A stretch of DNA of 64,000 nucleotides, taken from Bugula neritina (taxonomy: Eukaryota > Animalia > Bryozoa). The stretch spans positions 34,992,080-35,056,079 of the forward strand of contig OZ037765.1 of the NCBI GenBank assembly GCA_964035545.1, read 5' to 3'. Both the position numbers and the translations under genes were made by a program. This document shows, in pieces, positions 3,670 through 61,826 of this stretch. The notes under the pieces are model-generated. The model was not told the DNA's origin and did no database searches. It saw only the letters and a program-made list of their open reading frames with translations. How positions within the stretch are numbered: the stretch's first letter is position 1; each line of letters opens with the position of its first letter.

Positions 3670-3693
3670 TGGTGGCAGCAGTTAAAACTAATA

Positions 3694-8065: not shown

Positions 8066-9527
8066 GTTATTGCAAGCATTATTCAATTCATATTCACATT
8101 GTAATCACAGCGAAGCTTAAACTTTATAGCTTTGTATTTACGTGCATGACTAAGTTTTAATTTTTTTAAAAATTTTATATGTATTGAAAATATGTTTAAA
8201 AACTTTACCAATAAACAAAACTAAAAAAATGGACACATAATATATAAAAAAAAATAAAATCACAAAAGTGGCAAAATTTTTCCTTTATAACTCATATAAA
8301 CTTGCGGTACCATTAGCGACATAATGATTTTTCATGGTTTAAAGTCAACACTCTTAATATACCACACTGGCTAGGGTATAATATTATTGTTTAGCGAGCT
8401 AAGTAAATAACTTAAACTCTCGGTTCCGTTAGAACAAATGCAACATTATTAATTATTGGTTATATTATACTTCAAACTTATGGGATTACCCTTGTTATTA
8501 CTATGATCACTATTACTATTAGTATTACCTACTCTTCTAATTAGGCAACTAGTAGCAATTATTTAATATAAAAATACTAAATACTGGAACAATTTTAGTG
8601 TGTGTATTGGTACGAGAGCATTTCAGTATGAGTATCAGTGGAATTACATTCGCGAGTCACTTGCTTTTACTTTTTAGGCTTGGGAAAATCAGAATGAGAA
8701 TGACATTGCAGTTGCTGTGATTGCAAAATCAGTGGGCGTATTCAGTGCCTTAGGCATAAAACTAAGACTATAAAGCAAACAAACATCAACACTTGATTTG
8801 ATATCATTACACTAGCTTGGAATTACGTATTCATATTGATATTATACAGAGATCAGCAAACTAGTTTTTCCTACCAGTACTGGTGCGTATACTATTTCAA
8901 TTGTTTACAGTTACTTATACTTATAGTTATTGTAAATAAGTAGAATATTATTCAGCATTACGCCAGCGACTACTGAAACCTAAAGTAGAAGAACAGTAGA
9001 CGTAGCTATTTTTGTGACACATGTCCAAATTGAGTTTGACAGCTAGGTTCGTGTTGTAATTGACTTTGTACTTCGATTTTCTTTTCTCAGCAACCGAAGT
9101 AAAAATTGCCTTTTTCTTGCAGTTTAAGTTGAATTATAACATTTGTATTTTACAGTTTTGTTTCTTAAAATTACACTCATTAGTCATTATCTAATCACTA
9201 AAAGTAGGTTTTTTGTGTGCCAATCCTGAATGTTTATTTTGATTGTTTGGCATAATGATGATACTTTGACTCATAGTCAAACTGAAACTGGGCTATGGTT
9301 TCACTTTTAGTTTTACTCAGTCTTTTCAGTTGAAAACTCTAAAGATTGTGTTTTGTAACAAAATCCACCATTCTGACTAGCACCATGATTGAGTATGACA
9401 CTTTATGAGTAGCTCTTGGTGTGACACTGACAGAAACCTCATTCTACAAGAAATATCTCCAGGTGCACTGTTGACTAGAGATGTTATATTGTTATTGTGA
9501 GCTATATTGGTTAGTACAGGTTCCACC

Positions 9528-11311
9528 ATGCCACTTTTGAAAGATGAAGTTAACGCCGAAGGGAGAATAGCTTACATAAGAAGCCATGTCTCTGAATCTC
9601 ACCCTGTTCTAGAGAAATTGAAAGAAGTAAGAAGGATGACTTCTAAATTCCTCGTCTAAAATTTGTTGCTAATTATTTTATGAAAGTAATTAATAATGAT
9701 TTGCTTTTCTAATTTCGTGTTTTAAAGAATTTCAAAGTCTGGAAAAACGTTAATTTATGATGGCCATTATTAGAGTTTAAACTAGTTTGTCAGCTAATGG
9801 TATTTGATGTACCAATTAAATTAATGGTTTTTATTGTTTTAGTTTGTCCTCATTTAATATTATATTAAATAGGGTGTGAAATATTGAAGGTATAGTATTA
9901 TAGGATCACTGTATCCACTTTACTTTAGATAACCGAAGGCCGAAGCAGGGCAGCCATGCTAAGTGATTACGAAAGCTCTGTGCTCCTCTCCAATATGCTC
10001 AAGTTTGCATGTGCTAAGAAGTGCATAGATGTAGGTAAGATAAAGCCTATTTATAGTTATAACTGACCTGACCTAACTGTTTATAGTGCAACAGATAATG
10101 AAACTGCCAGGTAATAATCCTCTTCAGTGTAGCACTGGTTATTAAAGACGGCCATGTTGGTTGGATTATTTACTACTGTATATGAAACTAAAATAGAAAA
10201 CATGGGAAGTCCCGTATTCAGATATAGAAGAATGGTGTACCACCTGATACTTTAGGTGTGTTTACTGGATACAGCAGTCTAGCCTGGGCACTCAGTATTC
10301 CTCAAGATGGTAAAGTTGTAGCCTGTGATATCTCAACTGAGTTTACAGATATTGGAAAACCATTCTGGAAGGAGGCGGGTGTAGACCATAAGATTGATCT
10401 GAGGATAGCACCTGCTGTTGAAACACTTCGTGAGTTCACCATTTTGCAATGTTATTGTAATGTTGCAGACAAAAGTTAAGTTTTTCTCATTCATCTCACT
10501 GATAGCTTTAAATTTATTGTATATTTTAATTTTTAACTCTTCCTAATTTGACTTCTTTTACTTAAACTAAATTATTTAGATTCAACTGGTGAAACTGCTG
10601 ATTTATGCACACCTGTTCGTGCTACATGTTCAATCAGTGAAGCTACTAGTTGGGCATGACTTTCTAACCACTACTTACTCATTCACTTCGATGACTCACT
10701 GACTGACAAACTGTAACTCACCAGTGGCTCATTAACTAGTAACTAGTAACTAAACAATTAACTGAGTATAACTATTTCACCTAGGACCATGTCACCATCA
10801 ACTGAGTAACTCTTACTTACAACTTACTGATCACTCTCTGACTCATGACTCACAAAGTAATGAGTCACTTATATCATACAAGATGACTCATTCCCTCACC
10901 ATTACAGAAGCTATGGTAGATGGCGGAGAGACGGGTACATATGACTTCATGTTTATTGATGCTGACAAGGAGAGTTATGATACGTATTATGAACAGGGAC
11001 TCCAACTGCTTCGTCAGGGGGGAATCATTGCTGTTGATAATGTGAGTTCAACTGTTATGAGAATTTTCAAGTACATACTGCTTTCAACAAGTTACGTGTG
11101 TTCCCTAATCTTAGTCGTGTTCTTCTATCTTCTTAGCATTTTGATATTCTGTTGGTAGAGTTTCTGGAAGGGGCGGTGTATGAAAGAGAGCGATATGTCT
11201 CCTTCCACACAAGCTATCCGTCAACTGAATGCTAAGATAAAGAAAGACCCTAGAGTAACGTCTGTCATGATAAATATTTCAGACGGAATATTCATTTGTC
11301 TCAAGAACTGA
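9528..11311 (+). CDS. COMTD1: O-methyltransferase copy 1 (COMTD1/CCoAOMT, Methyltransf_3 family), about 221 aa; exons 9528-9626, 9929-10034, 10256-10429, 10908-11041, 11159-11311
   Basis: GT-AG exons join in frame; [13 protein letters not shown] motif, VVACD, FIDADK and AVDN metal-binding motifs, DPRV...DG C-terminus; AATAAA at 11401. The symbol is family-level, not proven orthology. Confidence 0.88.
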
Positions 11312-13717
11312 TGTTGACTCAAACTTTATATTCACATTCCAGTCTAAAGAGTCAAAACAATTGATAACCTAGCTATGTTCTTAGCCTGTATTCCTGTCTG
11401 AATAAATTGCTACACACAACACAACTAAGCTGCCAGTCTGTCAGTTGGAAACCTATAAAACTTGTTGAGTTTGTAACTCCCAACTCAGCTACCACATCTT
11501 AAGATCTATTTACTCCATGTTTGTAGCCCCAACTCAGCTACCACATCTTAAGATCTATTTGCTCCATGCTTGTAGCCCCAACTCACCTTTTACTCATTTT
11601 GCAAAAACTAGTTCTGCTAGATTATCTAAGAGTTATCTCTCCTGAAGCTGCCTCTGCAGCATCTTGTAGACTGAGTAAGCTAGCTGCAGGTACTGCTGCT
11701 TTATAGAGTATCTGCTCTCATAAATAGCTTGTGAGCTGCACTGGCGGTATTATTCTACACACCATGCATGCTGGGAGTGTGTGGAGAGTGTCAAATAGAT
11801 AGTCCAGTGGGTGTAGCCAAGTGGGCGTAGCCCAGCAGATAAGATTATTTGGCATTCTTCTTTTCTATGCAGCTGTATATCTCAGCTATATAATACTACC
11901 TTATACAAATATATATACTATACAACTGTATATATAATACTACTAAATATATATAACATACAGCTGCATGCATATATACCCAGATTTGAGAATAATATAA
12001 ACAAACATGTTTAAATATCTTATCACATACTCACGTATATAGGTACATATAGGCACTGCTGCTATATTTTCCCAGAATGCCCTATTATATATGTATATAA
12101 AAACTAGCTTCTTTTATTTGTGACTATTTTCTGTGTCATATGATTATAGTTTATATAGACTTTCAATTACATCAATACATTCAATTTAATTTAATCTTAT
12201 TGGCTTTTTTTTCAATTTACACCATCAAAGAACTAATTGTTAACTACATTAGTTGTCATTAGATGCATTCTGTTTACAGGTATATAATATTACAGGACTG
12301 CATTTTCAGGTCATGGCCTTTTCTTGATTAATTTCACAACTACCCTTCTTGTTTGACAATATTATATTATCTCTCATGCATGATCAGTACATGATAATAA
12401 ACTATGAGCGAGCATAAAAAGAAACCTAAAATTGAAATTAAGTGATGAGTTGTTGACAGATATTTAAGAGTTGCATTACTTTTTTCTCTTCCACTTATTC
12501 AAAAGAGGTTTTAGAAGCAGCACAACTTTCAGGGTCAACAAAAGCCATGTTTGCATTGACATTGTTGTCCGAATCTACGGCTTCGCGAATGAATTGCACT
12601 GAATGGCTTCAAACTTTGTGCGGCTTCAAACGATTTATTTATATTTTTACGATAATGTTGTTATAAATTATCGTGACGGGCTCCCATCTGTCCACATCTA
12701 GTCAGTTGAGTACTCAGTCTCAACTTCACGCTTCACACTTCACAAACGGATGCAATGTTTTATATTAAATTTATAATCATAATGTTTCATTGGTCTGTCG
12801 GTTGACACCAGCTCTGATTACTCCCACTCATCTAAATCCTACTACTTATTCCATTTGCATATAAAGTCTGATATTAATATCCATGCTCATACCGGATTGA
12901 TATTCCTCACAGTTACACTTACTGTTGGTGTTAGCGTAGTGGTCCGGGTCATTCCTGATTCTACCACCACTGCTACTATTACTATTAGTATTAGTATTAC
13001 AGTACTAGTACTAGACCTAGTAGTAGTAGTTGTACTACTGCTACTACTAGTACTAGTATTGTTATTAAAATTAGCAGCTCTAGCGGCTACTGAATTAGTC
13101 AATTACCGTACTATTACTATAAGTATAAGTAACTGTAATTACTAACTTAAACTTGGTAACTTTAACTTGAAGTTATCAGTTTGAGTTACTGTTGAGGAGT
13201 GTTAGTGTTTAGAATTACTGAATTGACATTTATTGATTTAAATTAGTATATTTACTTCTAGTTCTACTATCTTACTAATACTAATACTAATAGTTATAAT
13301 AGTAGCAATACTAATAGTTATAGTATTACTTATTACCATTACTATTACTGTGTTAGTAATAGTTATACCTATACTTATAGTTATAGTATTAGTATATATA
13401 TTAATAGTAATAGTGATACAGTTAGTGTTACACTAATTTTAACTTTGATATCAATTACCACCATAATTTTTTTCCCTTTGCCTTTTGTAATACATCGTGT
13501 TAGTGCATATGAATAGAAATTGAGTAATAAAGTCAAAGTGTGATTCATAAACTACCCAGTAAATATTTTGTAAACTTTACTGCCGTTAACCTTTCACCTT
13601 ATTTTCTTTTAATTTACTGTCCTGTTATAAATGTGTGCTATGTCGTTGCTCATAATGAGGTGTAGAAAAACTAAGGTGTAAATTTGGTTTCTATTTAGTT
13701 GGCTGAGAAGCTGAATA

Positions 13718-16133: not shown

Positions 16134-18734
16134 CTGCTTCCTGTGTGCACTGCTATTGGCTAACCTTTGACCTAGCTAGCAGGGGTTGTTACTTTTTACT
16201 CTGTTGAGCTGTTAGCTAAACGCACTTGCCACTGGCAGTCCTGTTCTCCACTTTCCATGTTGAAACTAGCAATTCTCGCCAATTTACTTTTGTTTACATT
16301 TAAATACAGAACAAAGGAGTTTTGCTTGTATTTTGTACTTTTTTGACAACAAATCGTATCCAATTTTTTTTTATTCTTTGGTAAACTACTTTGAATGTTT
16401 TAGCTAAAACTTTAATGAAAATAATCATTAATTGGTATTATGATATTCTACTAACTAGGTTTTATATTTTTGCCTAATAAAGATGAGTTAACACGATCAT
16501 CTGCCAATTACAATCAGCAATTTCAATTATTAAATGGCAATAAGTAACAAGCAATTAGCAATAAGTTACAGGCAATCAGCAATAAGCAACAGGTAACAAG
16601 TAACAAGCCATTGTTTTGTAGTTGATTTGAATTAGAAGTTATAAAAGCTAGTTGGTACATGAGCAATGTTTACTATTCTGCATTATGGATTCTACAACAT
16701 GCAAGTGGTATGCTTCATTTTATAAATTTTGGGATACAGTAAGACTGTAAGAAACAACTAACTGTTCCCAGGTATGTACATACAGGTTTCACATATAATC
16801 CAAAATCAGTAAAAAATAATTTTGCCAGTAGTTACTGTTATACAGCAAAGGTTAGGGGGCGCAAGCCCTTGTTACAAAATGATAAAATTATTATAATACC
16901 ACAGGAACAGTATCGGGCCATGGCAATAGTAAGCTGATCACAACTTGCAAAACAACAACAAAGCGAACTCGGGTGAACTCACGTACGCATGTGATTCATT
17001 TTGACTGGTTGTGTCTAGTTTTGGCGAGCACAATGCGAAGAGAAAACAGCTGCGGTTGTTTAGGCAGTGCTGAACTGGTACAAGATATGACAAAAGTGTT
17101 AAAAACTGCTACAGTAGGTCATTGTAGTAACATAGACATTATCATTTACTATATAGATTGTAATATTACAACTAAAAGATGCTACAAAATGAAAACTTAC
17201 TTTCAAGAACTCTAGCATCTAGAGTCTAAACTGAATACTGGCACAGCACTAGTTGCAACACGCGTGGGAAGCTAAATTAACGGAAGAATTAATAGACTAT
17301 CGCGTAAATTCCCAAGGCTATTGACCCTATTAGCCAATAAGAAAAACAAGAATCGCTTTAAGCAGCACAAAGTTCAGATCACTGAGCGCAGTGTTTCAGG
17401 AGGAGGTAGTTTTAAGTGTATATACACGCTGCGCCCGATGACTTCAATTTGTGCTCCTTTTGGCACTAAGCCTTTTTCTGTTGGAAATTCATTCCTATTG
17501 TTATTCCGATAAAAACGATGCGAAGGAACTTCAATGGATATTTTGAACTTGGTTAAACACGACTTCAACCTGCTAGTACTTTTTTAGTTCACACTGCTTT
17601 AAATTTATTGGAGAGAGCAACCTAATACTTAAAGTTAATACTAATAGTTATACTTATAGTAATACTAATTGAAATTCTAATACTAATAGTAATACTAGTA
17701 CTAATACTAATACTAATAGTAATACTAATAGTAAATGTAATACTAATATTTTCCCTTTATCCAGACATGTATTTTTTTATGCTATTTTGCTCATTTTTGA
17801 AAACTCACTAAATTATCTAGTAATACTCACTAAGTCTAATCACTAATGTCAATGATTATAAGCTGGTAGTGATATTAATAACTATAACTATAAGTATATA
17901 AATTCATAGACATAAAAAGTAACGTTAAACTAACTATTGAGCTTAATAACCGACTTAAAGTAACTGTAGTGTAAGTAACTTGGTTAAAATAACTGTAAGT
18001 AACTCAGTAATATATGCGCGCGAGACGGACGTGTTTTCTGAGCACTCTTGCCAACCTAAATATTTCAAAACCTTACACCTATCTTATCTATATTTATTAC
18101 CTATTTATATTACCTAGTACTACCTATGCTTATTTCCTTACTTACTTACTTTACTAACATTAACACAGAGAGTGACTGTGAGTTAAATTAAAGTTTTAAT
18201 AAAACTACGTTCGACGACTGGCAGTGACTGTTAGTTACTGAAACTGACTGCCAGATTGATCTAACAAATTTCTAGTGATTCTCATAAATAGATAACTAAA
18301 ATAATAATTGAAAATACGTTAGTATTAACTTCATACTACTGTAACAGAGGAAAAGACCGTGTGCGCGAGTGTTTGTAACTCTGTTTGAAAACACCATTAG
18401 TCACAGTCGAACTCATAATATCTGCAAATTGATGTCCAGAGCTCCGTAAGTTTTCACTGATTCAGCCAAGATCATACTGACAACCATATAACTATAAGAC
18501 ATTAGTGATTAAGTACACTCACCACCGCTTCCAGTTACTGTTAGTGTTAGTTAACTGCAAAGGTATTATTAATATTTAATTCGTATTATAAATTATTGGA
18601 TTGGAGTAACATTCATTCTGAAGTTAAAGCTTCATAGAAAATTACTATATTATATGAATATCTTTTTAAATTAATATTGTTACTGATAATCTACTAAACG
18701 AAAAAGCTTCAAAACAAATTGAACCGTGGTCAAC

Positions 18735-19766
18735 ATGGCCAAAAACATCCTTTATAGCGACAGAGGGAACGACAGTGTTTTTAGTGACGGGCAAGATAAG
18801 GGGCCCTCACAAACTTACCCCACTCGACTAAGTGTGAGTCAAAATAAGGCAACAATCCAAAAGAACCCCGAATCAAAGCAAAAATGTGTTACATGCCAAA
18901 ATGAAGAATGCACCATCTTGGTTGGCAGTGGAAAAAACCAAAAAAAGCAAAAAGCTGAATTTAAGTGGATTGAATGTGACCTCTGTGCATTATGGTTCCA
19001 TAGCACTTGTCAGGATCTCAAGGTTTCAGAGGCAACTGCTATTGTCAAACTGGCCAGCAAGGGAGTCAAATGGTATTGCTCAGGATGCCAAAAGGCTATA
19101 CAAGGCCAATCACCATCAATCATACCTCAAATGTCCAAACTTAGCTGCCTGCAGCAAATGGTGGAAAAACTGAATGAAAAGGTGGATGAATACCAACACC
19201 ATACCACCGAACAAGTTCAATACCTAAAAAAGTCCTGGGCCGAGACAGTAAAAAATGACCAACTGGCCAAAGATATGAAGCTCGCAGTGCAAGCTTCTAC
19301 TTCTACCAAAGCTCTACTGACTGCAGAACTTCAGAAAAAAGAGCTCGAAGAGCGTAAAAATAATGCCATTCTCTATGGTCTGAATGAACAAAAAACTGCA
19401 ATGGAAGATATTACCGAGCTGATAAAGAACTCCCTTTTTAAAAACTATGACAAACCACAAAAGGCATTCCGGCTTAGTCAAAAAGATGAAGGAAAAACCC
19501 GCCCTATCAAACTAACATTCAAGGACGAACAAGCAAAATGGAGCTTCCTCAAGAGAGTAAACCACCACTTGCGAGCTGATAAAATGTTTTGCAAACTAGA
19601 TGTTAACAAAGAGATACGAAATAGAGAATACCAGCTACGCGAGCAGATGCGCAAGCTGAAATCTGAAAATCAGGGTGAATATCGCATTAGAGACCTATCT
19701 ATCGAAAAGAAAAGTCCCTCGGGAAACTGGGAGAAAATGAATCCTGTCACAACAAACGGAAATTAA
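18735..19766 (+). CDS. LINE A ORF1 (PHD finger, coiled coil, RRM-like domain)
   Basis: CVTC..WIECDLC..WFHSTC..WYCSGC fits C4HC3; NAILYGLNE and RPIKLTF motifs are typical of LINE ORF1 RRM. Confidence 0.88.
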   Translation: MAKNILYSDRGNDSVFSDGQDKGPSQTYPTRLSVSQNKATIQKNPESKQKCVTCQNEECTILVGSGKNQKKQKAEFKWIECDLCALWFHSTCQDLKVSEATAIVKLASKGVKWYCSGCQKAIQGQSPSIIPQMSKLSCLQQMVEKLNEKVDEYQHHTTEQVQYLKKSWAETVKNDQLAKDMKLAVQASTSTKALLTAELQKKELEERKNNAILYGLNEQKTAMEDITELIKNSLFKNYDKPQKAFRLSQKDEGKTRPIKLTFKDEQAKWSFLKRVNHHLRADKMFCKLDVNKEIRNREYQLREQMRKLKSENQGEYRIRDLSIEKKSPSGNWEKMNPVTTNGN

Positions 19767-22519
19767 GCCTTTTTTATGCTAACACTAGATCAGCAAAAGG
19801 AAAAACCACTGAAATCACTGCCTTGACCAAAGACTTTGATATTATCTGTCTTACTGAGACCCATCTTGATGCCAACATATGTGACAGCTGCATTATAGAG
19901 ACCCCTGGTCTGGATTTCTTTAGACATGACAGGAACATCCATGGTGGTGGGGTCCTAGTCGCTACAAAAAGTTTTCTGCAGGCTAGTAGCATAAACATTG
20001 AGACATATGGCGAAGAAATGGTCATCATAAAACTTCCACCAAATCTTATTCTGTGCTGCTACTACAGAGCCCATGTATCACTTCTAAATATCAGTAAAAT
20101 TAATGATATCATTTCTTCCATCTTACAGAGCTATCGTCACTGCAGATTTGTACTAATAGGAGACTTTAATCTCCCTGGTATAGACTGGTCAGCAGGTATA
20201 GTAAGACCAAACGCCCATTATAAATCATCGCAACAACAATTTATTAACATACTCCATGAAAACTGTCTGACCCAGGTTATTGAAGAGCCAACACACACAT
20301 TCGGTAACACCCTAGACATTATCTGTACCAGTGACACCTCCATAATAGATTCTATAAATGTAATTAGGCCGGGGCTCAGTGATCATTACATCATCATAGC
20401 TAAACTACTAATTGAAAACCCACCTTCCCAAGATGTTATCCACAAAAATCATAAAGACATTCTCATCCATCGCAAAGCTGATGTCATTAAATTTAGAAAC
20501 TATATGAGCTATGCATGTGAAAAGCTTTCACAGATGGATAATGTCCAGCAGATGTGGGATACTTTCTCTGTCGCCTTCAAAGAAGCTATTGAAATATCTG
20601 TACCAAAAAAGACCATAAAAATAAGAAACAGTGGCCAACCACCTTGGTTTTCTAAAGAGGCTAAGAAACTTCATGACATGCAGATGTCATTATATAGAAA
20701 ATTCAAGAGAACAAACAACCCATACTTTTTGCAGAGATACCAACAGCAAAGAAGAAACAATAAAAAAGCCTTCAAGTTAATCAAGAAGGAATACATAGTG
20801 AACAAAGTCTGTAAGCCTCTGCTGAAAGGAAACAGCAAACCCTTTTACAAGCATCTGCGACACAAACGGAAGTGCCAACATCCACTTACAAGTATTAAAA
20901 TTAAAAACGGTAATATAACTACAGACAGTCTGGAATGCGCAGAAACTTTAAATAGCTATTTTCATAGCCAGTTCTGTGTTGATGAAGCCATTACTGATCT
21001 CCCCCTTCTCCCTACTAATTGCAGGACTCTTGAGATCAACCCTGAAGGAGTCAAGAAATTAATTCATGATCTGAAGAACAATAAATCTCCAGGACCTGAC
21101 CAGATACGAAAGTGTGAGCTTTTAATAGACCCTAATATAGTAGCTCAATGTCTTACATATGTCTTTCAGGCCTCAATAGACTCCGGAGTGCTCCCAGCAC
21201 AATGGAGAACTGCCAATGTGACACCAGTCCACAAAAAAGGTGCCAAAGACGAGCCATCAAACTATCGCCCAATCTCTCTCACCAGCATCCCTTGTAAAAT
21301 GTTAGAACACATTGTCCTACATTATCTAAACAAATTGCTTGACAGCATGCTCTACAACAGACAACATGGTTTCAGGAAAGGCTTAGGATGTGAAACTCAG
21401 CTTTGCGCTACCTACCACGACATAGCAAAATCTGTGGAACATGATCATGTTATTCATGGAGTAGTCCTTGATTTCCGTAAGGCGTTTGATAAGGTTCCCC
21501 ACACCCTACTCATGCAAAAAGTCCGTTGTATTGATGGCATTAACCCAACCATAGCAAATTGGATCCAAGGGTTCCTGACAAAAAGAAGTCAGAGAACTGC
21601 CATACGTGGTGTATTATCATCAGATCTCCCTGTCTCCTCGGGGGTGCCACAGGGTTCGGTACTAGGGCCAACCTTGTTTCTTATATACATAAATGACCTA
21701 CCACAAGTGATAACATGCAAAGTAAGTCTCTATGCCGATGACACCCTGATTTATGCTGCTGTGAATAGCAATGAGGACAAGCAGCTTTTTCAGACAAATA
21801 TAGATGCTCTACATAAGTGGTCCATGAAATGGAAAATGCCTTTTAACACGGAAAAGTGTGAGGTAATCGTCTTTAGCAAAGCCCCAAGGGCATATCCAGT
21901 GTTTGACCCCAGCTATGCACTTGGTGGAACTCCGCTCAAATGCAGACAGGAGATCAAATATCTTGGTATAATTCTGCAGTCCAACTTAAAATTTGAGCAA
22001 CATATTACATCTAAGATCAAAAGTGCCTCCAAGGTCCTAGGTTGCATAAAATACTCGCTTTATGAAGCCCCTGCCAATAGCAAACTACTCGCATACACCA
22101 GTCTCTGCCGACCAATTCTAGAATACGGCGATACTCTTTGGGACCCAGCGGATTCAGCTAATATTGATGCCTTAGAGCGTGTACAGTCCCAAGCAATCAG
22201 GTTCATTAACAATATCAAAGGAAGACAAGGCATCTCAGAAGCTCGAAACAAACTCGAACTACAACTTCTCAAAGACCGAAGAAAAACACATAGGTTGTCA
22301 CTGTTAATGAGAATCCTCTCAGATGAATCTAAACACCAAACCTTAGCCTCAGCTTATGATGAACTGACTAAAAATAAAAACAAGTACATTATGTATACGC
22401 GAGCTGCACAGAAAGGTGAGCCAACATCTATCTATGCTGCGAGCAAGGTCTATTTTAACAGTTTTCTCCCACGCAGTGTGAGAGATCTGAAGCTAAGGTC
22501 AACTAACACACAACAATAA
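19691..22519 (+). CDS. LINE A ORF2 (AP endonuclease + reverse transcriptase); frame opens at 19691 with no AUG before the endonuclease domain
   Basis: LSLFYANTRS, CLTETHL, GDFN, LDII, SDH (APE); YRPISLTS, DFRKAFD, GVPQGSVLGP, YADD (RT). Confidence 0.93.
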   Translation, partial: RPIYRKEKSLGKLGENESCHNKRKLSLFYANTRSAKGKTTEITALTKDFDIICLTETHLDANICDSCIIETPGLDFFRHDRNIHGGGVLVATKSFLQASSINIETYGEEMVIIKLPPNLILCCYYRAHVSLLNISKINDIISSILQSYRHCRFVLIGDFNLPGIDWSAGIVRPNAHYKSSQQQFINILHENCLTQVIEEPTHTFGNTLDIICTSDTSIIDSINVIRPGLSDHYIIIAKLLIENPPSQDVIHKNHKDILIHRKADVIKFRNYMSYACEKLSQMDNVQQMWDTFSVAFKEAIEISVPKKTIKIRNSGQPPWFSKEAKKLHDMQMSLYRKFKRTNNPYFLQRYQQQRRNNKKAFKLIKKEYIVNKVCKPLLKGNSKPFYKHLRHKRKCQHPLTSIKIKNGNITTDSLECAETLNSYFHSQFCVDEAITDLPLLPTNCRTLEINPEGVKKLIHDLKNNKSPGPDQIRKCELLIDPNIVAQCLTYVFQASIDSGVLPAQWRTANVTPVHKKGAKDEPSNYRPISLTSIPCKMLEHIVLHYLNKLLDSMLYNRQHGFRKGLGCETQLCATYHDIAKSVEHDHVIHGVVLDFRKAFDKVPHTLLMQKVRCIDGINPTIANWIQGFLTKRSQRTAIRGVLSSDLPVSSGVPQGSVLGPTLFLIYINDLPQVITCKVSLYADDTLIYAAVNSNEDKQLFQTNIDALHKWSMKWKMPFNTEKCEVIVFSKAPRAYPVFDPSYALGGTPLKCRQEIKYLGIILQSNLKFEQHITSKIKSASKVLGCIKYSLYEAPANSKLLAYTSLCRPILEYGDTLWDPADSANIDALERVQSQAIRFINNIKGRQGISEARNKLELQLLKDRRKTHRLSLLMRILSDESKHQTLASAYDELTKNKNKYIMYTRAAQKGEPTSIYAASKVYFNSFLPRSVRDLKLRSTNTQQ

Positions 22520-23348
22520 ACAGCTATATGCTGCTATACTAACTCATACTGACATTTATCACTAACCAAAGAGGCGCTCCACGTTTGCACCATAACGGTG
22601 ACATTGAGTGTTCTATCGTCTACGAGGTGAGTTACGAGGTGAGTTACCACGTCTCAGTCTGAGTCTGTTGACTGTTCAAGCTTAACTTCAGTCTTCGTCA
22701 TCATGTACTTGTGGTGCTAGTAGTAGTGTTACTGTTACTCATACTGGTAGTCTAAGTCACAATAATATTATTCATAGTCATAGTGTTCTAATTTTTACGA
22801 CGTGAGTTATGGACTTAGAGTCGTACTTACTTACAGTTACAACCACGGAGTTGAATCATGGTGATACTGATAATCAGTGTCACTATCATATTCATATTGA
22901 TATTGATATAATCCAATTATTTATTAATGTTATATTAATATAATTACATTCATAATGATACAGTTACACTAAGTCTGCTACTACTAAAGAGCGACTTACA
23001 GTTACACTAAGTCTGCTACTAGACAGTGACTTACAGTTACACTAAATCTGCTACTGTCTTATTTAATCAGAAAGAAAGATGTAGAAATTAAGAAGTATGG
23101 TATCATTACATAGTCCCTTTGAGTAGAAACATCAATAACCCAAATCTTTTAATGTTCTATTATATGGATTTTGGTTTGGATATTTGGTAAAATTGCGATA
23201 AAACGACTCCCTTTGATACATTTTTTATCTAGAGCACCAGCTTTCTGTTATTTCTCTGTTACTGCTTTACCTCAAAGTAGCAAAGTTTTATTTAGAAGGG
23301 GAGAAATTCCTTATAACTATGAATCAGCAGACTTGTAGTCCTAATGAA

Positions 23349-23457: not shown

Positions 23458-23536
23458 TCTTGTACACATCAAGTTATTGGTCCCGTATGATAGTCAATAT
23501 TATTAATGACTTGTTTACTGTTAGTCAGGGGAAAAC

Positions 23537-32110: not shown

Positions 32111-33309
32111 GTTTTGGGGAAGTCAGCTCATACGAGGAACAGAGTAGAGGGAGGGAGGAGTCATATTGCAACCTAAAATAGAGCAATATAATACACCTCC
32201 TATGTCTCCATCAGGTGCAACAGCATACCCCATATGACAGATACTCAATCATGGGAAATTCCAAATTTAAAACTTGCCTATTGATGAAAAGATTGAATGT
32301 TTCTTGCAACTAAATATTGTAATAAATTATTAGTATAGTCAGTATATAGTGCAGTAACTGTTTCATTATGCACAATGATAATCATTATCAAGTTCAACAA
32401 TGAATAATTAGTAATTCATGGAGACAAAATATTAGAAGGCTGATAAAATGGCTAGAACCAATAGTACAACTTGATTTTAGTTTTAAAACTATTGGATGTG
32501 GTCTATAATTAATTTGTCATCATCATTTGAAGTAAAAGTATCACATTATATGAGTATTAAAACTACTAATAATAAAGTTTATACCTTGAATAACTTAGTC
32601 TTAAGGCTTGCAAGTTAAATTTATTGTAAGCAATACTAAATTACTAGTAGCAATAGTAACACTAGTAATATTTGTATTACTATTACTAATACTAATAGTA
32701 ATACTATAACTAATACTATTACTATTAGTATTACTATTAGTAAATCTAATACTAATAGTAATACTAATACCCATCAGACTTAGTCATAACTAATAGTTAC
32801 TACTTACTAGTACTAGTAGTAGTAATAGTAATACTAATACTATTAGTAATAGTATTAGTATTAGCATTACCAGCTACTATTACTATTAGTAATGATTAAG
32901 TATAATAATAATGGGTATTACAATTACTATTACTGTATTACTATTAGTATTAGCATTATCAATAGATCTATTAATACTAATACTGATCAGTATTACTATT
33001 AAGTATTAGTATTACTAATACTGTAATAGTTATACTTATAGTTATAGTAATAGTAATAATAATATTTAATTTTATAGTTAAACTTGAAAGGTGAAGGTAA
33101 TCATAATCATAATGTAGATGTTTACATTTAATGATTTATGTATTATAACTTTGTATTTAATGCGAACATATTAGTTTCTATTTTATAAACGACGGATGAA
33201 ATAGAAGTAGTTGGCTAGTTTTTCAGTGAGTTTAGTCACATGCTTCAGTTTACATGTGAGCACATGTTTTTGCAGATTATCTGTAAGTTTGATGGACAGT
33301 TCTCTCATC

Positions 33310-33480
33310 AATAGACGCTGTCAGTCTTTTGCAAAATGGCGATTGCGAACCTAAAAACCACGCCCTGTCAACTTTTTAACCAATCATGCACATAAGACGA
33401 AGTAGACTAAACTTTCGCCGTAAAAAGAGAATAGTAAGGGGCGTGGCCTCAACAAGCAGTTGTAAAGATTGGACAAATGC
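33310..33480. promoter_or_regulatory. Probable bidirectional promoter core for PKNOX and TRAPPC4
   Basis: Between divergent genes: YY1-like AAAATGGCG 33333, GC/KLF boxes CCACGCCC 33358 and GGGGCGTGGC 33438, CCAAT 33380, ATTGG 33468, CTGTCA 33318 and 33365. Confidence 0.6.
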
Positions 33481-33667
33481 GTAATGAAAATAAGTTTATT
33501 AACTTTGGGATCAGCCTACCAGAAGGTCAAGGTTAAGACCAAATTTTCTCAACCGAGATAGATGGCATGTATATAAGTACCAGTATTGCCAAATGATATA
33601 AGTTGTAGAATTTTGTCTATGAATTTTAAAGTTTTAATTTTCGTTCATTTCCTGGGCTCGTAAATTG

Positions 33668-33707
<40 letters not shown>

Positions 33708-35062
33708 CATAGTATTGAGCTGTTTTAATTACAATAATTTTAAGTTAGTGCTATTACTATTAGTATTTATATAAATCGAAAATATATATCGAAACCCCCA
33801 AAATTTGATTTAAATAAAAAGTTCACGTCTAAGTTCCCGTTCTACGACTACTGGTACTACTAGTACTACGAGTACGTCTGGTCTACTACTACTACTACTA
33901 CTACTACTACTAATAGTACTACTACTACTAGTACTGTACTAGTACTGTACTAGTAGTACTACTATTGGTACTTCTACTTGTAGACTCTAGTTTTACTTCT
34001 ACTCATACTGGCACTGTCATAGTGATAGTAATACCTTACGGGCCTACTCATATTTCCACTGTTGTAGTAATAGTAAATGTAATACTAATATTAATACTTA
34101 TAATAAATGTAATATTAATAATAAGTTATGGGTCATTTTACTTAATTTAGTACACACTGGATATCTTCAGTTTTTGGCTATTTTTCACAATTTAGCTGGT
34201 AATGAACATGGTCTTTTGGCCAAAACTAGTAAAAAACCAATAAATACACCTGAATAATCAAAGTTCTTTTTAATTTTGCTTCATTTTCTAGGTTTTTTCC
34301 TAATTATTCAGCTAGTTTTAGTTACGGATCGTTACGGTTTTTTCGTAACGGTCTGCACATATAGAATATTAAGTGCATATGACAATGACCTGTGCTTTAA
34401 TGTTGGGGAATCCCCTTCCAGTCTTTTTTGTTATGCGTAGTTAAAACCAGCACATAAAAATAGCATGTATAGTAAATTTCAATTGATTTTGAGCAAACTT
34501 TATTGTTGGGTCATAAGTTGCTGGTGTGTACTAAATGAAGTAAACTGACTCTTATACTTTACTTGAAGGAATCTTTGGATATAATTAAAATTTTAATCAA
34601 ACTTGAAAGATTGTAGTGTTTCAAGTTTTTACTTATAAAACTATCAACTTCAATTACGTGAACGTCAACGTGTGAAGTTTTTTAATATTGTGTGCGTTTT
34701 GCATGCAATTAAAAAGTTTTTAAAGACATATTTTTGCAATCTTGTAAAGATTTTTACAAACTACGTTGTTACTATTAAGGTACAAGGCTAAAGTTTAAAT
34801 TTAATGAGTTACTGCTTTAATTTTTTTACCTAATCTCAATGTTTTTATCAGCTATCATCATGCCACTAAGTTTCCTATATCAATATTTAACAAAATTCAT
34901 TTGCAGTTGCTTTATATCTGATTATGTAGACCCAATACATGCTATTCACATATCATAATCATCCCATATTGTATTTGAATAGAGTAATGAAAATAGAATA
35001 AGCATCTGTGAAGTAAATTAACTCTGTTATTGAATGATTTTAGCTTGTGGACCGTCTGTTTG

Positions 35063-48100: not shown

Positions 48101-48840
48101 ATAAGAAGAGATATATAAGAAGAGATATATAAGAAGGGATATATAAGAAGGGATATATAAGAAGGGATATATAAGAAGGGATATATAAGAAGGGATATAT
48201 AAGAAGGGATATATAAGAAGAGATATATAAGAAGGGATATATAACAAGAGATATATAAGAAGGGATATATAAGAAGGGATATATAAGAAGGGATATATAA
48301 GAAGAGATATATAAGAAGAGATATATAAGAAGAGATATATAAGAAGAGATATATAAGAAGGGATAAATAAGAAGGGATATATAAGAAGGGATATATAAGA
48401 AGGGATATATAAGAAGAGATATATAAGAAGGGATATATAAGAAGGGATATATAAGACACACCCCTGTTCCTCCATCAACTCCTGCATCTCTAGACACTTC
48501 AGCTCTACTTTCCTTTTCCTTTCATGAATCATAATCTCAATGTTTGGCCCTTTGTTAATATTTTCGTCCAGCTTTTGGAGTTGTTCCTCTGTTTTGTAAG
48601 TCGTCTGAAAGAATTATAAATCTATATTTTATAATTAGAAACAAAAAATTCACCTGCCAAGTTTCTCACTTAGCAAATTTTTGAAAAACTTCTTTGAAAA
48701 CTTGAACACATGAAATAAAAATATTTAGCCTAAATAAATCTGACCTTGTCTTTGTGGTGACGAATGGCACCCAAGTTTCTCTGCACATACCCATTGGTTC
48801 CACTGCCCCTAGCAGTTTGCAGTCCAATACCGTTATACAT
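39125..48840 (-). CDS. SRRM2: SRRM2/SRm300 (cwf21 domain + Ser/Arg-rich IDR), about 714 aa; exons 48745-48840, 48462-48604, 42505-42621, 42002-42169, 41675-41740, 41461-41541, 40058-41365, 39675-39788, 39125-39176
   Basis: [72 protein letters not shown]; C-terminal exons are low complexity and less certain. Confidence 0.9.
40355..41075 (-). repeat. Coding 33-bp repeat, about 22 copies, encoding S(R/G)SPPRKSRKD
   Basis: In-frame within SRRM2 exon 7. Confidence 0.93.
41822..41970. repeat. 24-bp minisatellite, 6 copies, SRRM2 intron 4
   Basis: ACACTCTGCCCCTACATAGTAGTA. Confidence 0.95.
42170..42452. repeat. 35-bp minisatellite, 8 copies, SRRM2 intron 3; each unit ends in the acceptor
   Basis: CTATAAGCATATGTAAGCACAGTGTGATACTGCAT. 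Confidence 0.95.
42651..48455. repeat. 14-bp satellite AAGAAG(G/A)GATATAT, about 5.8 kb (about 415 units), filling SRRM2 intron 2
   Basis: Direct reading; the intron is 42622-48461. Confidence 0.99.
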
Positions 48841-49716: not shown

Positions 49717-51301
49717 TATGCATGTTATAGGGACAGGCGCATTGTTGAGTGGCTATAACTACAACCAAATGAGCTCCACCGACAACTATGAGTATCATCA
49801 TGACTAACTCTATCTTTGAGAATATGATCAAGTAATTAACTTAATGAGCACCAATAATAAATTGAAAATATCAGACCACTGCTTTCATGGCTTAAACTAA
49901 TTTGCAAGGTTTATAAAACTGAAAAAGTATTGCATATTTACAATATATGACTCTTAGTAAAAGAAGCAAAAACTGAGCAATGTATATTTAAATTTCAGTG
50001 ATTTCTATTAGTACTACGATGAGTTTGAAATTAAACTTTAATTCAAGATTTTAGGGTTAATCGATATTTATATCAATATAGTATATACACAATCACAATG
50101 ATGATAATTCTATTGCTATTACTATTCTTATTATTATTAATTATAATACCAATAGTTTTACTATTAGCAAAGGTAATACTTGATTAATACTAATGTTCAT
50201 TATTATAATAATACTAGTAGTCAACAAATATTATAATTACAGTAATACCTGATCAAAAGTTAAAAATTAAAGCAACACACTATATCTAATACTTATAATA
50301 ATACGTATACTACTTTTAAGCTTAATGTAATTATATTAACGATCAGATTAACAATCTTTTGTAGGTTGTAGGTTACTTTTTTATTTAACAAAACCAAAAT
50401 GAAAATATTATAATAGTTTTCTATCACAGACAATTAGATACTTGAATATTGGATCAAGTACAGGGCATTCTCACACTGCATTCATATCATAGACAAGCTA
50501 ACCAGGTCTGTTTCGAAGTGCAAATTATTTTTGAATATATATTTACTGACTACAGATGCATACATGTAAAGCATAATTAAAACTATGACACACCCCTTCT
50601 AGCCAACAGCAACAGGGTGGTTTGGTGTTAGACAGGTATACTTAATAATTATTTAGAGTAAAACTGACTGCCACACTGATACTATCAATGACCATTACTC
50701 TTATCTAAAATATACACATAGACATCATACGGTCATAATCAATTTAATGTATTTATTAAAATTATATTAACTATAATTATTAGTTATATAACTATCAAGC
50801 TGAAGCTTAACACTAACAGTAAAGTGTTTATTACTATAAGTATCAGTAAGAGTATGAGTATGGGGAAGTCTAATGAGAGTCAGGATGAGAGTTGGTCACC
50901 GTCTGAGCTTGAAAGTTAGTTATACTTATTGTTAGGTACTGTTAGGGTGAGTTTCGGTGAAAGACGCAGACTGACCTCAACATAAAAATGGAGAATTACT
51001 ACTAGAATTTCAATTAGTATGACACTGAAACTCAAACTCATGAAACAGAGTTAGTCACACTCACTGCCAGTCAGTGACTGTGAGACTGAGTGCGGCTGGC
51101 TGCTCGCTCACGCTTCAAAACTCCTTAATTTTTAAACACTCAAAACAAAATTCGATTCAATAAAACTCAAAGTAAAACTTCAACTTCAAGAGTTCAACTT
51201 GAACTTGAACTGAAAGTGAAAATGCAAATTCAAATCGAGTCGGAATTTCAATGTAAATTTCAGTGAAATTTTTATACTTATCAACTTATACTTATAAGTT
51301 A

Positions 51302-51589
51302 TACCAACATCAATTTCTGCATCCTCACAGACCTTTCAAAACAGTTTTCTCCCTCGAAGCATCAGAGATTTGAGGATACCACCTCATAATAGAAACTCAG
51401 CTTAGCTATGTGCTAAAACCCCTTTAAATTACAATTAAAATATCTAAACTTAGCTACATGCTAGAATAGATACATTTCAACACATGGTAAACCCAAACAA
51501 AAACAACATAAGAGGCACTCATAATTTTGCGCCCGTAGGTTTTAGCAGAGCGTTCTAATTTGTACGAGGTGAGTTACGAGGTGAGTTAC
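51302..51589 (+). mobile_element. 5'-truncated LINE C, relative of LINE A
   Basis: 51304-51405 encodes PTSISASSQTFQNSFLPRSIRDLR..* versus LINE A PTSIYAASKVYFNSFLPRSVRDLK; same (ACGAGGTGAGTT)2AC tail at 51564-51589. Confidence 0.9.
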
Positions 51590-52389
51590 TTATAGTTATA
51601 GTAAATGTAATAGTTTTTCAAATTGAAATGCAAACTAAAAGTAAAAGTAAAAGTGAAACTGTTGCGAACAAACATGATCAATTCATGACCAATATGAATT
51701 AGAATATCAATTAATATTATAATTATGATTATCGGTATGACTATCACTATGAGTATGAGTATGACTATGAGCATGACTGAGATTCAGATTGAGTATGAGT
51801 ATAAATCAAAATATGCCATAGAACAAAAAAACTCAATAGATACAACCTGAAAAAATAATCCCGTTTAATTTATTACCGATTAATAAATAATAAGTTATTT
51901 TACCATAAAAATAGAGATAACGTAGATATTTAAGTTTCAAGTAGTAAAATAAAGGCGATTTCGATACCAATCGTTTTTAACAATAACTGACAGAAGCAAG
52001 TTGAACGAGGGGTTTCCGGTGAATGAAGCGCCTTTGCGCATTTAGGAAATTTCAAGTTGTTATCCGATTCAAATCGCAATTGGGGAAGCAACACCCACGA
52101 AATCAAACTTACTTGTATACCACTGTAAAAATTATTTGTAGCCTAAAACCACTGTCTTCATAGGATAGCAATAGTTACCCTAATTTCACAGTTGAATAAG
52201 TTAACAGATGCCAAATTTGACCTAGGCCTAGAAACATTAGGTAAGTGCAGACAGTCACAGATAATTTCTTTGTTGCATCATATTACTGCTAATAATAATG
52301 ATTTATTTCCAACCTTAAATAACACATTTAAATCTATGAAATCCTCAACCCATAACACGAATACCCGTATTAACGCCTTCAATGCTATA

Positions 52390-52554
52390 GTCTGCGATTC
52401 GAGCCTGTACCTGCAGGGTTTCCTGTTGCGCACTGTCCGGGAGCTCGGTATGGGGGAGATAGTAGCGCATTTCTGAGCCTGGATAGATCCGAGGGACCTA
52501 CAATAACTCTCTCCTAGAAGTCTTGGGACTTAACCCAATCAAAATCAAATCAAA
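52390..52554 (+). mobile_element. Probable SINE fragment with a Nin/Deu-like central domain
   Basis: GC-rich block; B-box-like GATTCGAGCC; GTATGGGGGAG..TGGATAGATCCGAGGGACCTACA resembles my recollection of the Deu/Nin core; 3' hairpin AAGTC-TTGG-GACTT, then an (AATCA)-type tail. Confidence 0.5.
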
Positions 52555-52845
52555 CAGCATTCATATGCTTGTCTCCTCACCATTTATAAAGAGGCAGTCA
52601 CAAGAAGATTAACGGTGACGAACTGGTTTAATTTACTTTATTATTGTACATTATCACGTATTAGAATAAAACAGAAATCAACACTACTTGCAATGTATGT
52701 TCAATAAATAAGTTGCACATAAATTTATAGTTAAAAAATTAAAAATTCCAAGTTAAAACAAGAATGAGCAAATATAAATAGAGAAACTCCAAAGGCAACA
52801 TGGATTGTAGGAAGTAAAACGACTTAAATTATACAACTGGAAGAG

Positions 52846-57463: not shown

Positions 57464-58613
57464 GGTGACCTGAAATATTGGACAGTCTAAGCCACACCTC
57501 CACAAGCCCCACCCCCTCCCCACCAGTCACAATAACTACCTCATCAAATGTACAGATCTTTATTTAATAATTCAATAAGAGTTTTCTGGTATATAAATAA
57601 TATATAACATAATATTTAAAAGCTGCTTATACTGGTACTAATTAAACTCCTGATTGACCAAAATCTAATGCTAGCAGTTGTTCTATAAGGTTATAGTAAT
57701 TTATTATGCTAGTTATTGCTAATTATTATTGATAATTCATTTACAATCATACAGGAAACAAAAAGATGACTGAAATTTAGTAGCAGTAATAAAAGGAGGT
57801 ATAAAACTAACTTGGAGGTAAAATTGTTATTAATGATTACTTATAGTTATGCTGATGAACGATGGAAATAACATATTCATACTGATACCCATAGTGATAG
57901 TCATACTGATATTCATACTGATACCCATAGTGATAGTCATTAAGATGACTTATGTATTCATACTAATACTAATACTAAGTCATGAACATATCTTATAGTT
58001 AACTTATATACTAAGTCCCATAGTCATACTGATACTAATAGTCATGATTTACGGAAATGAGGCATATACTAATACTTAACTTACACTTATAGTCTACAAT
58101 ATACTTACAGAATTACTATTGCACTATTAGTATTACTATTAGATATTAATATTATACATATACTTATTCTTATACTCGCTTATACTTATAGTTATAGTCA
58201 TATAGACATACTCACTATTACTAATACTAATGCAGTATTACTATTAGTATTAGTATTAGTAATACTATTAGTAAATGTAATACCCAGAGTTAGTCTGATC
58301 TCATAGTCATAGTGATACTAATAGTGACAGATAGTGATACAGTGATACTGACAGTCAAACACAATCACTATCAGTCAATGTCAACAACTTCGAGAAGAAA
58401 ATGACTTATACTTATAGTTATAGTAGTTATACTTATAGTGATTTACTATTAGTATTAGTATTACTATTACTATTAGTATTATTATTAGTATTACTATTAC
58501 TATTAGTATTAGTATTATAGACTATAGTCAATCTCCTAAACTTAGAGATAATGACACTCACACTGAGTCTGATACTAACAGTAACATGTACTTATAGTTA
58601 TAGACTATAGACA

Positions 58614-59293
58614 TACTTGACTTACTTGACTTACTTGAAGATGCAATCACGTTAGACCACTAGATTAGTGTAAGCGACGTGCCTCGTTTGGTGAACAGAA
58701 TTATTAAATGTAGTTAATACTTTTATCGCATAAGTGCAGTTCTGTTTTAAGACTTTGGTGCCAGTACAGGGCCTTATGAGTCCTGTCTGTGAGCAACATT
58801 TGATGTTATTTTCATATCACGTATTGTTCTGGGTAGGAAGCTGGCATGAAATAGTGAGGTGTTAGTTCTAAAAGTGGTGGGCATGCCATTTGACTGGGAC
58901 CTGGTGGTAACTGATGTAGTGGGCTGATCGATGAGGTGTTCATACGACTTTGAGAGTGAAGGATGATATTCCTCTTTGGCCAGGATCCGCATCAAGAGAC
59001 TAAGTCGTAGGTCTTTGCGCCTGTTTTGCAGGGGGGTTAATCCAAGCCTAGATCTTGCCTCATCTGAGCCAACCCTGCCTTTAATACCTGCCACAAATCT
59101 CACAGCCTGCTCTTGCACTTGCTCAATATCTACTACAGCCTTCTTGGAGCTCGGGTCCCACACAGCAGCAGCATATTCTAGGTGAGGACGACACAGGGCT
59201 TTGTATGCTATTAACTTCGCCTTTTCTGGTGCCCAATACAGTGCCCTTTTAATCATCCCGAGTTGTCGTTTTGCTGTGAGTAATTTCTGCTGT
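58614..59293 (-). mobile_element. 5'-truncated LINE B (same clade as LINE A, different family)
   Basis: ORF 58774-59256 has KLIAYKALCRPHLEY..WDP, RLSLLMRIL and SFLPRTIRDMK, which align with the LINE A C-terminus; tail (TCAAGTAAG)2TCAAGTA at 58614-58638. Confidence 0.9.
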
Positions 59294-61826
59294 TATACTT
59301 AATTTTACTTTTACTTTTAGTTTTAGACTTGTACTTGTAGTTCAAGTTGTAGTTAATCACTTAAACTTAAAGTTAATGTTATTGTTATAGTTTAAGTTAC
59401 ACCTACCTATATAAATACTTAAAATAGTTATATATAGTTACACTTACTATACTTATAGTTATAGATTAAATAAAATACTTATATAATTATTAGTCTTAAT
59501 GACCTTTGAACGTTCACCTACTGTGTTATTATAATATTTTTTATAATTATTGGAATTATTTTGCAGGCAAAACATTAGTCATTCATGTTTTCACATGCCT
59601 TTTTGCACTTCTATCGAAATACACCCTCTTGCGCCAAAGAGAGTTTGGGTTTGTCCTTCCTTATAGTGGTTGAAGGCTAGTAAGCATTATTGATTGTTTA
59701 TAGCATCGTCATTGTGATGGCGCTTGCCAACAGAAAGCAGACGAGGCGAGTCTTTGAAAACTGATCATTGTAACAACGTCATCATTTTCAGCATCATCAG
59801 TAAAAAGTACTGTGAGTATTGAGGAATAATTTGTTGTGCTATCAAGTATCAATATCACCAACTAAGTTTTTTTTATACTGGGCTCTTTGACTTCAATTGA
59901 TATTATAATTATTATAAATTTGTTATTATAAATAAAAATATATTTATAATAAGGATAATTTATTAATTATTATTATTTAAATCGTACTTATACTTCTTTA
60001 CTTTTAGTTTTAGGTAATCGAAAGACTAGAACTAGAAGTTTAAGTTAAAGTTGAATGATTAATCTAAAAGTAAATGTAAATCTTATAAATTATAATATTA
60101 ATTATATCGTCATCTTCATCTTGGTAATTACTAATTACTATTAGTATAAGTATTAGTAATACTTATAGTTATACTAACAATCACAATGTCAATATAACTA
60201 TAAGTATAAGTAATAACTAATAGTAAAACTAAACTAATAAGTAATACTAATACTAATAGACATAGTAATACTGATACTGATAGTCATAGTGATACTGATA
60301 GCTATACTAATACAGTAATAGATTTAGTAATACTAATAGTAATACTACTACTAGTAGTACAGTAGCACTGGTACTACGTCTACCGTACTAGTACTAGTAG
60401 TACTGCTAGTAGTAGTAATAATACTACTAGTACTACTATTACATTAGTGTTACTATTAGTATTAGTTTAAACTTATAGTTAATCATATTGTTATACTAAT
60501 ACTTATACTATTAGTAATTGTATAAGTATTAGTATAACATTATGATTAACTATAACTCTATAAGTATAAACTAATGCTAATAGTAATAGTAATACTAGTA
60601 TCCATATTACTGTTATAATGTAACTACAATCATTATTGATCTAATAAGATTATACTAATTAGTATCCTAATAATCATCATATAAATTATAGGAGTAATAT
60701 TCAACTGTTACTTAGATTACAAGTTGTACTCAAACATACTGAGCCTGATGCTTATATAATAAAACTTGAAAGATATTATATTCATATTAATATGGTTGTA
60801 TATCTGTTATAGTAATTCTCATACCCGTGCCAGTTGTGGCACTATATTGTGACAATTAAATGTATAGCCATTCTCTCACTGATATTAGTACAACTAAAAG
60901 TCTCGACTGTTGTTATAAGTAACTTGGCACTGCTTTTTTAAGTCTTAAAGTTTGTAGTGCAAATTTTTTCCAATATATAGTTGTAGCTTACTAATTGTGG
61001 GCAAGGGTTACCACTCCCTTGTAGCCTGTGTGCTCTGCTAATCTCCATCACTTGTTGGGTTCGTGTCTAGTGGAAGTCCATTATTGCGTTAGGTTTGGGA
61101 AAGTTATAAACACTTAACAGTACTAACTCTTCATGAAAGGGAACCAATGCCAACTTAAAATCTGCAACTTTGTATCTGCCCTGCGTCTTTTGTTGGATTA
61201 CTGATTTAAAAGCTGTGGTGAACAAAGTTCCTTCTTAAACTTCTATAATTATGGCTGATGCAAAATTTGACCGGCAATATAAATGCAATTAATTCCCTAT
61301 TTCTATGAAGCTTACAAACACATTTCATAAGTATTGGGATAAATCTACTCAGCATACTTGAAACACACAGTGTTATTCTGTGACTAGACAGCAGGGTGGC
61401 TGTACTCTATTCAGAGATTACTGTAATATGCAATTAAGGTGCTATTCATGCTGCTTGGCCAGCAGGTGCTGTAAACACTTTGATGAAGGGGTTGCAAGAC
61501 TCCAATACCATCTAATAATTCTAGCTTGTATTCAATATACACTTAGCTAAGCTCAGTTTCACATCTTCAGCACTGCACAGGTGATATTTCTTCTCTAGCT
61601 CAAATAATACTGTAACAGGTTTGGAATATTGTATATATATTTATATTCAATCAATGTGAACATAACATCATCAATGTATAGTGTATGAGAGCTAACAAAA
61701 ATTTAATATTTGCAATATGAAAAGCATAATAAGCAAGGTGTGCCATGTGGTGTTCACACTACAGCTTTTGGTCTGCATTCACCACCTGTTACTCACAGCT
61801 GTCTCTCTATCTGTATTCGGTTGTTG

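Follow-up and report, generated by a model that had tools for sequence, protein, structure and literature searches.

A six-base lattice with complemented joints in AT-rich islands of the bryozoan Bugula neritina, possibly built from stacked hAT-like excision scars

Transposons of the hAT type prefer the 5' ends of genes and insert at targets with the consensus nTnnnnAn, while the canonical footprint of Tc1/mariner elements (TA + C(A/T)G + TA) adds 5 bp, needs a TA target and contains letters derived from the element. When hAT elements such as Ac/Ds, Tam3, hobo and Hermes excise, the directly duplicated target stays behind, the joint carries the complement of the base that adjoined the element, with a short palindrome centred on it, and joining proceeds through a 1-nt overlap (PMC5873905, PMC5499845). 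Groups of hAT elements with 5-, 6- and 7-bp duplications have also been described, and hAT6 is part of a lineage to which hAT families of animals also belong (PMC12730594). Here we describe a 64,000-nucleotide window of the Bugula neritina genome (C1:34992080-35056079, in a 216-Mb bryozoan assembly) in which ten AT-rich islands are written in a lattice of AsT and TsA trinucleotides (s, C or G) at steps of 6 bp. The duplication step itself complements the base at the joint. An earlier reading of the window from its letters, the original prediction, had called the process behind the islands undescribed, and no paper describing the lattice feature was found in the literature searched.

Like hAT footprints, the islands show a remaining direct duplication, a complemented base at the joint and a short palindrome centred on that base, and T and A stand one base inside the ends of the target. 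Unlike in hAT footprints, where it would be 8 bp, or 7 if one base overlaps, the step of the lattice is 6 bp, and nearly all flipped bases are C or G. The lattice does not show the canonical 8-bp duplication, and with a period of 6 only hAT6 or hAT7 variants would fit, as the 6-bp or 7-bp duplications of these groups would give the length of the lattice step. Described footprints are single events at a locus, whereas the putative scars in Bugula neritina are stacked by dozens in one place and number about 10^5 genome-wide. The three-letter palindrome with an undetermined centre resembles Tc1/mariner footprints, in which it comes from the pairing of two like overhangs, but the lattice shows nothing at lag 5 and the 3-bp repeat around AsT is not enriched alone. 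Short tandem units in AT-rich, indel-polymorphic DNA are also reminiscent of compound or degenerate microsatellites. Slippage, however, makes faithful copies, whereas a new lattice unit differs from its neighbour by the complement at one fixed position.

The grammar that had been proposed for the islands, a hexamer repeated with a single C/G swap, is recovered in the mismatch counts at lag 6. C/G is the commonest mismatch at this lag although C and G are rare, with 61 cases in the window and 131 in a comparison sample of random 200 kb (20 random 10-kb pieces); at lags 7-11 the C/G counts are 14-42. Most of the swaps in the window (41/61) are located in AsT or TsA. AsT pairs number 900 at lag 6, 752 at lag 12 and 654 at lag 18 (vs about 500), and TsA pairs, which make up about one third of the lattice, are likewise enriched at these lags. 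Only a marginal rise at lag 6 was seen for AsA and TsT (466 and 446 vs roughly 390-450). There is no excess of AsT pairs at lag 3 or lag 9, and an origin from a period of 3 was rejected for this reason. The phase of the lattice is coherent over only 2-3 units.

Adjacent units have identical spacers in 36.5% of cases, vs 6% expected, and thus neighbouring units are true duplicates. Runs of lag-6 matches of exactly 5 bases occur at twice the expected frequency and are bordered by C/G-complement mismatches. The bases on either side of the flipped letter are complementary in 79% of cases (baseline, 40%), and the next pair outward shows no excess, which gives an arm length of 1. Also enriched are double complement changes at two joint positions (76 vs 32), and C-then-G order exceeds G-then-C by 1.5-1.7-fold. 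The preference for C or G as the flipped joint letter corresponds to an excess of about 187, vs 41 for A/T.

The behaviour of the joint letter was followed in young lattice triples, i.e., three successive lattice points joined by identical spacers, which mark a recent duplication (differing spacers mark older units). Three C/G letters are read per triple, and independence predicts that 25% of triples are homogeneous (CCC or GGG). In the 200-kb sample, unmasked and with period-3 arrays removed, only 17 of 174 young triples (9.8%) are homogeneous (p = 6.5e-7), and where the outer letters are alike the middle letter is their complement in 64 of 81 triples (p = 1.4e-7). The window alone gives 8/80. 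Genome-wide, the proportion is 9.5% for AsTTATAsTTATAsT (606/6387) and 9.2% for AsTAATAsTAATAsT (2421/26174). Triples with differing spacers are homogeneous in 26-32% of cases (i.e., random), and at the control periods 5, 9 and 10 the proportion is 52-75%. Period 7 yielded 8 young triples and period 8 none. The test was first performed with repeated 16-mers masked, and the unmasked rerun without period-3 arrays gave the same result, ruling out a masking artefact. The C/G letters are anticorrelated in young units and random in older ones. Thus, the mark appears to be made at the birth of a unit and not to be maintained. A joint that is complemented at duplication makes it unlikely that the lattice stems mainly from slippage, from random flipping of C and G or from a static code.

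Several simpler routes to the lattice were rejected. Replication slippage predicts homogeneous triples, as at periods 5, 9 and 10, but only about 10% are found at period 6. Simple duplication of a C...G seed cannot yield CGC, yet CGC and GCG together account for one third of all triples. A 5-bp target combined with one random C/G does not match the centre letter, which is C/G only with C/G flanks (22% with A/T flanks), and a random junction letter predicts an independence from the flanks that the centre letter does not have. A 3-bp target with three element-derived letters, as for Tc1, is not supported, as the 3-bp repeat around AsT is enriched only with full 5-base identity. Genome-wide, context-specific C-to-G mutation was rejected on the basis of the intronic minisatellites, from which the islands had been said to differ and do: minisatellite variants are mostly transitions (371/540), and AsT sites in these arrays are largely stable and mostly do not flip.

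The same observations bear on the idea that hexamer microsatellites were later hit by very fast C-to-G flipping near promoters (e.g., by a deaminase followed by REV1 bypass). The dominance of C/G differences at lag 6 would fit such a process, as would the location of the islands close to gene starts, with their exposed single-stranded DNA. If flips followed duplication, however, the youngest units should have the fewest of them, and homogeneous triples would fall to 25% only at saturation, whereas the youngest triples show 10%, with 79% flipped between like neighbours. The flips need complementary neighbours (AsT and TsA, not AsA and TsT), which fits no deaminase context. The AsT sites of the intronic minisatellites mostly remain unflipped. 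A matching excess of C-to-T changes is not seen. We therefore regard later flipping as very improbable.

It is somewhat less improbable, though still unlikely to a marked degree, that the lattice is a selected code, in which ACT on either strand every 6 bp binds a protein or shapes chromatin or RNA and the choice of C or G reflects the orientation of the motif. In favour of selection, A-s-T is kept while the spacers drift, phasing is limited to palindromic trinucleotides, and each of three old O-methyltransferase paralogs encoded in the window has an island at its 5' end. Selection on slippage products nevertheless predicts identical letters in young units, for which the observed value is about 10% vs 52-75% at other periods. 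The letters randomise with age and the coherence of phase is short. Comparison of the islands of the old paralogs gave only low-complexity matches and no collinear alignment. A static promoter-flanking code, one of the explanations initially offered, is thus disfavoured, also because the C/G anticorrelation is confined to young duplications.

Both the extent of the islands and their vocabulary correspond closely to what had been predicted. The islands occupy 9% of the window and contain 77 of its 80 young lattice triples, and their GC content is 19-33%. All four of the recurrent words are present at the positions given for them, with one copy displaced by a single base. ACTTATAGTTAT was found at exactly the listed positions (10 forward, 2 reverse), i.e., 12 copies vs 0.08 expected from shuffles, and its 3967 copies genome-wide are about 25x the base-composition expectation (our own estimate). 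The counts for TAGTAAATGTAATA (4) and ATAGTCATAGTG (3) agree, and TATTCATATTGATAT occurs at 8828 and at 22889, not 22888. The flanks common to the 12 copies of ACTTATAGTTAT amount to only about 3 bases, and we conclude from this lack of common flanks that the words are made recurrently and are not copies of one element or repeat family. In the self-comparison of islands by BLAST only low-complexity matches were obtained, and the homologous flanks of a dispersed repeat family (miniature inverted-repeat transposable element or short interspersed element, SINE) were not seen.

The islands are not peculiar to this region. In the random sample, where they were delimited by a threshold on lattice density, they make up 5.7% of the DNA and are present in 12 of 20 pieces. 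They also match thousands of contigs from across the genome (short contigs, other samples), which confirms that the vocabulary is real and abundant in independent samples. Within the island at 57830-58620, contigs from other individuals carry an additional 6 bp after 58341 and lack 3 bp (AGT) at 58421.

The original prediction had noted that all three long interspersed element (LINE) 3' ends in the window fall at islands, and each does abut one (22647, 51589 and, on the minus strand, about 58640); the chance of all three doing so is about 7e-4 (our own arithmetic, using the island coordinates of that prediction). The full-length LINE, a secondary insertion, has a (TACGAGGTGAGT)2.2 tail that stops at an island edge; its 5'-truncated copy has the same (TACGAGGTGAGT)n tail; and the minus-strand fragment has the tail (GACTTACTT)3 at 58610-58638, adjoining an island. 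These associations had suggested that serial tail-only insertions of LINEs wrote the islands, and the presence in the tails of AGTTAC and AAGTAAGTC, which are similar to island words, points in the same direction. The tails, however, are repeats of a 12-mer and a 9-mer that are absent from the islands, and comparison of the island words with the 3' tails of the LINEs of the window gave no match. The truncated LINE is flanked on both sides by ACTTATA(A)GTTATA, a target duplication that consists of island sequence, and thus this copy entered a pre-existing island. The LINEs landed in the islands and did not write them.

For the window, tail-only insertion is refuted by the target duplication together with the tail sequences. 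Tails inserted in reverse orientation would not swap C and G while keeping the spacer, the word copies lack common flanks, and decay of an (ACT)n repeat is contradicted by the lack of a period-3 excess of AsT. An origin of the islands from LINE or SINE tails inserted in series, or from a single decaying repeat family or (ACT)n array, is thus the least probable of the explanations considered, and only a very slight chance is left to it. The fine structure of the islands is explained best by a mutational process that writes sequence, and not by a repeat family or by simple decay. This part of the initial interpretation stands, and the "templated repair insertions" that it mentioned are close to the process considered below.

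We consider it probable that the islands are stacked cut-and-repair duplications. The more specific proposal that they are stacked excision scars of a cut-and-paste transposon of the hAT type is tentative (probability about 0.45). In this mechanism, insertion would duplicate the target and, on exit, the transposase would seal the flanking DNA as hairpins, the opening of which would place the complement of the adjacent base and a short palindrome in the repaired joint. Each event would duplicate a 6-bp step and swap the joint letter (C or G) for its complement, and a three-letter palindrome, A-C/G-T or less often T-C/G-A, would remain at the joint. The best-fitting geometry would involve either a 7-bp target, S-T-N-N-N-A-S (S, C or G), rejoined via one shared base, or a 6-bp target of which both copies are kept. 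The 7-bp duplication rejoined via one shared base would yield every class of triple except CCC and GGG, as observed. The lattice unit S-T-NNN-A(-S) would then be the hAT target S-T-NNNN-A-S minus one base. We propose that each scar recreates the preferred target, so that sites would be self-reinforcing and scars would accumulate at open chromatin beside gene starts. Both the transposon and the length of the target that it duplicates are inferred here, as is a role of chromatin.

Elements of the hAT type are present in the genome and are young. Three loci (C1:30462367, C3:28905230, C5:1593917; L021-L023) are identical over the compared element portion of about 2 kb; they contain an open frame of 563 aa, and their end reads ...CCCCAACCCTG. 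Further hAT loci are located at C3:4214841, C3:17496141, C1:26548718, C3:5105155, C6:2561703 and C7:5033836. This end sequence has 324 matches genome-wide, mostly without a partner end nearby. Among the hAT target sequences that were read, 3/4 fit S-T-NNNN-A-S, and one copy lies in lattice sequence.

A number of observations weigh against excision of a hAT element as the source. Scans for terminal inverted repeats and target-site duplications covering 283 kb identified no element with a 6- or 7-bp duplication (other matches were at chance level), and the sole hAT for which both ends were read has an 8-bp duplication. Lattices of period 7 or 8, which would be expected from 8-bp hATs, are absent. 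A strict target preference would be needed to account for a flipped letter that is almost only C or G, and joints that keep both letters, which are expected from a 7-bp target, are not enriched. The third of the lattice that consists of TsA is not predicted by the hAT consensus. Finally, the number of events, which is extrapolated, is far above any described accumulation of footprints.

The lack of a matching element beside a clear scar signature also favours a host process, in which a domesticated transposase or other nuclease introduces breaks, either staggered or capped by hairpins, into open DNA close to promoters, and repair writes the 6-bp steps. The tight association of islands with gene starts and the large scale of the phenomenon (about 6% of sampled DNA) are consistent with such a process. 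A direct duplication of fixed length, however, is typical of staggered strand transfer by an inserted element, and a break alone leaves the joint occurrence of a duplication and a complemented joint unexplained. We therefore regard a host nuclease as unlikely, although it is a better candidate than a selected code or C-to-G flipping. Returning to stacked scars, a still broader scenario is that lineage-specific, self-reinforcing scar writing built about 6% of the genome beside nearly every gene start, through a hairpin-forming nuclease kept by the host or an unknown family of hAT-like elements whose target measures 6-7 bp, and that the lattice was perhaps co-opted as a promoter-flanking spacer of bryozoan genes. 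This scenario is speculative and, in our view, doubtful.

The islands and the LINEs associated with them are listed in Table 1.

Table 1. Coordinates of lattice islands and associated LINE copies in the 64,000-nucleotide window
Feature	Position	Strand	Remarks
Lattice island	8450..8930	.	On the upstream side of O-methyltransferase paralog A (+ strand), recognisable from its exon at 9956 onward
Lattice island	12700..13450	.	On the upstream side of paralog B; conserved blocks begin at 13748
Lattice island	17620..18300	.	GC-richer core near 18000-18050; directly upstream of full-length LINE
Full-length LINE	18726..22647	+	ORF1 (open reading frame 1) with PHD finger; ORF2 with endonuclease and reverse transcriptase
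Lattice island	22650..23050	.	Begins at 3' tail of full-length LINE; upstream of paralog C (first conserved block 23567)
Lattice island	32630..33120	.	Left side of promoter-like core 33120-33850
Lattice island	33850..34130	.	Right side of promoter-like core 33120-33850; contains period-3 (ACT/AGT)n stretch
Lattice island	50750..51800	.	Holds 5'-truncated LINE copy
5'-truncated copy of full-length LINE	51305..51589 (start approximate)	+	Same type of tail as full-length LINE
Lattice island	57830..58620	.	Two indels in contigs from other individuals
3' fragment of related LINE	58640..59290	-	ORF2 C-terminus 45% identical to residues 742-893 of full-length copy
Lattice island	59290..59500	.	ACTTnn/AGTTnn blocks
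Lattice island	59980..60660	.	RNA-seq contigs cover 60866-61650, beginning about 200 bp downstream of the island

All islands had been placed near gene 5' ends. This holds for the three old O-methyltransferase paralogs, in each of which the island ends 0.3-1 kb upstream of the first conserved block; for the other islands, promoter-like sequence suggests the same location. The core between the islands at 32630-33120 and 33850-34130, for example, contains CCAAT and GC-box-like words and may function as a promoter. The islands at 57830-58620 and 59290-59500 were probably continuous before the insertion of the LINE that now separates them. In the paralogs themselves, one exon (10253-10436, 14616-14799 and 24544-24727) shows 98% identity among the three genes, vs 65-72% for their other exons, which points to gene conversion limited to this exon.

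Other mobile elements were identified in the window and in the additional sequences. An LTR (long terminal repeat)/gypsy retrotransposon at 3525-8065 (large ORF at 3694-7746) is not a LINE, although the original prediction may have taken it for one. Its 145-bp LTRs (3525-3669 and 7921-8065) are 100% identical, and an open pol of 1350 aa encodes reverse transcriptase, RNase H and integrase domains. Thus, the insertion is probably very recent. We identified five copies of a tRNA-derived SINE of about 200 bp with LINE-type target duplications of 9-11 bp (L007:2576-2774, L007:9363-9582, L012:182-411, L012:2789-2999 and L018:8620-8822), one of which adjoins an island; at the density seen in the 200 kb, several thousand copies are implied for the whole genome. 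A foldback family with long terminal inverted repeats, about 420-590 bp in length, is represented at L008:3878-4468 (beside an island), L012:7379-7799 and L014:270-375. Perfect palindromes of about 190 bp with long (TA)n tracts on both sides occur at L007:7058-7250 (arms of 96 bp) and at about L016:865-1035, with a related piece at L014:1-169. They are either foldback elements that target (TA)n, or the tracts were built by repeated insertion and excision with duplication of TA.

Many of the intronic minisatellite units, including those at 30653-31491 of the window, contain TACAG or CTGTA, the form of a Tc1-type footprint (TA+CAG+TA), and one array consists of (TACAG) x ~168. To judge from these motifs, scars of another class of transposon may seed such minisatellites. 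A further array, of 5.8 kb at 42652-48456, is composed of 414 copies of the 14-mer AGAAGGGATATATA with 95% matches, and has an extreme GC skew and the higher-order variant TAACAAG.

In practical terms, the lattice offers an inexpensive way to mark gene 5' ends in the Bugula neritina genome. If the proposed origin is correct, one repair signature would have written most of the promoter-proximal DNA of a whole animal lineage, and the islands would preserve, like fossils, the sites and the frequency of past cuts in the germline genome, with gene starts carrying a readable count of germline break-and-repair events. Transposon scars would be shown to be able to seed tandem repeats. As each scar would recreate its own target, a mutational process could in this way mimic a regulatory code.

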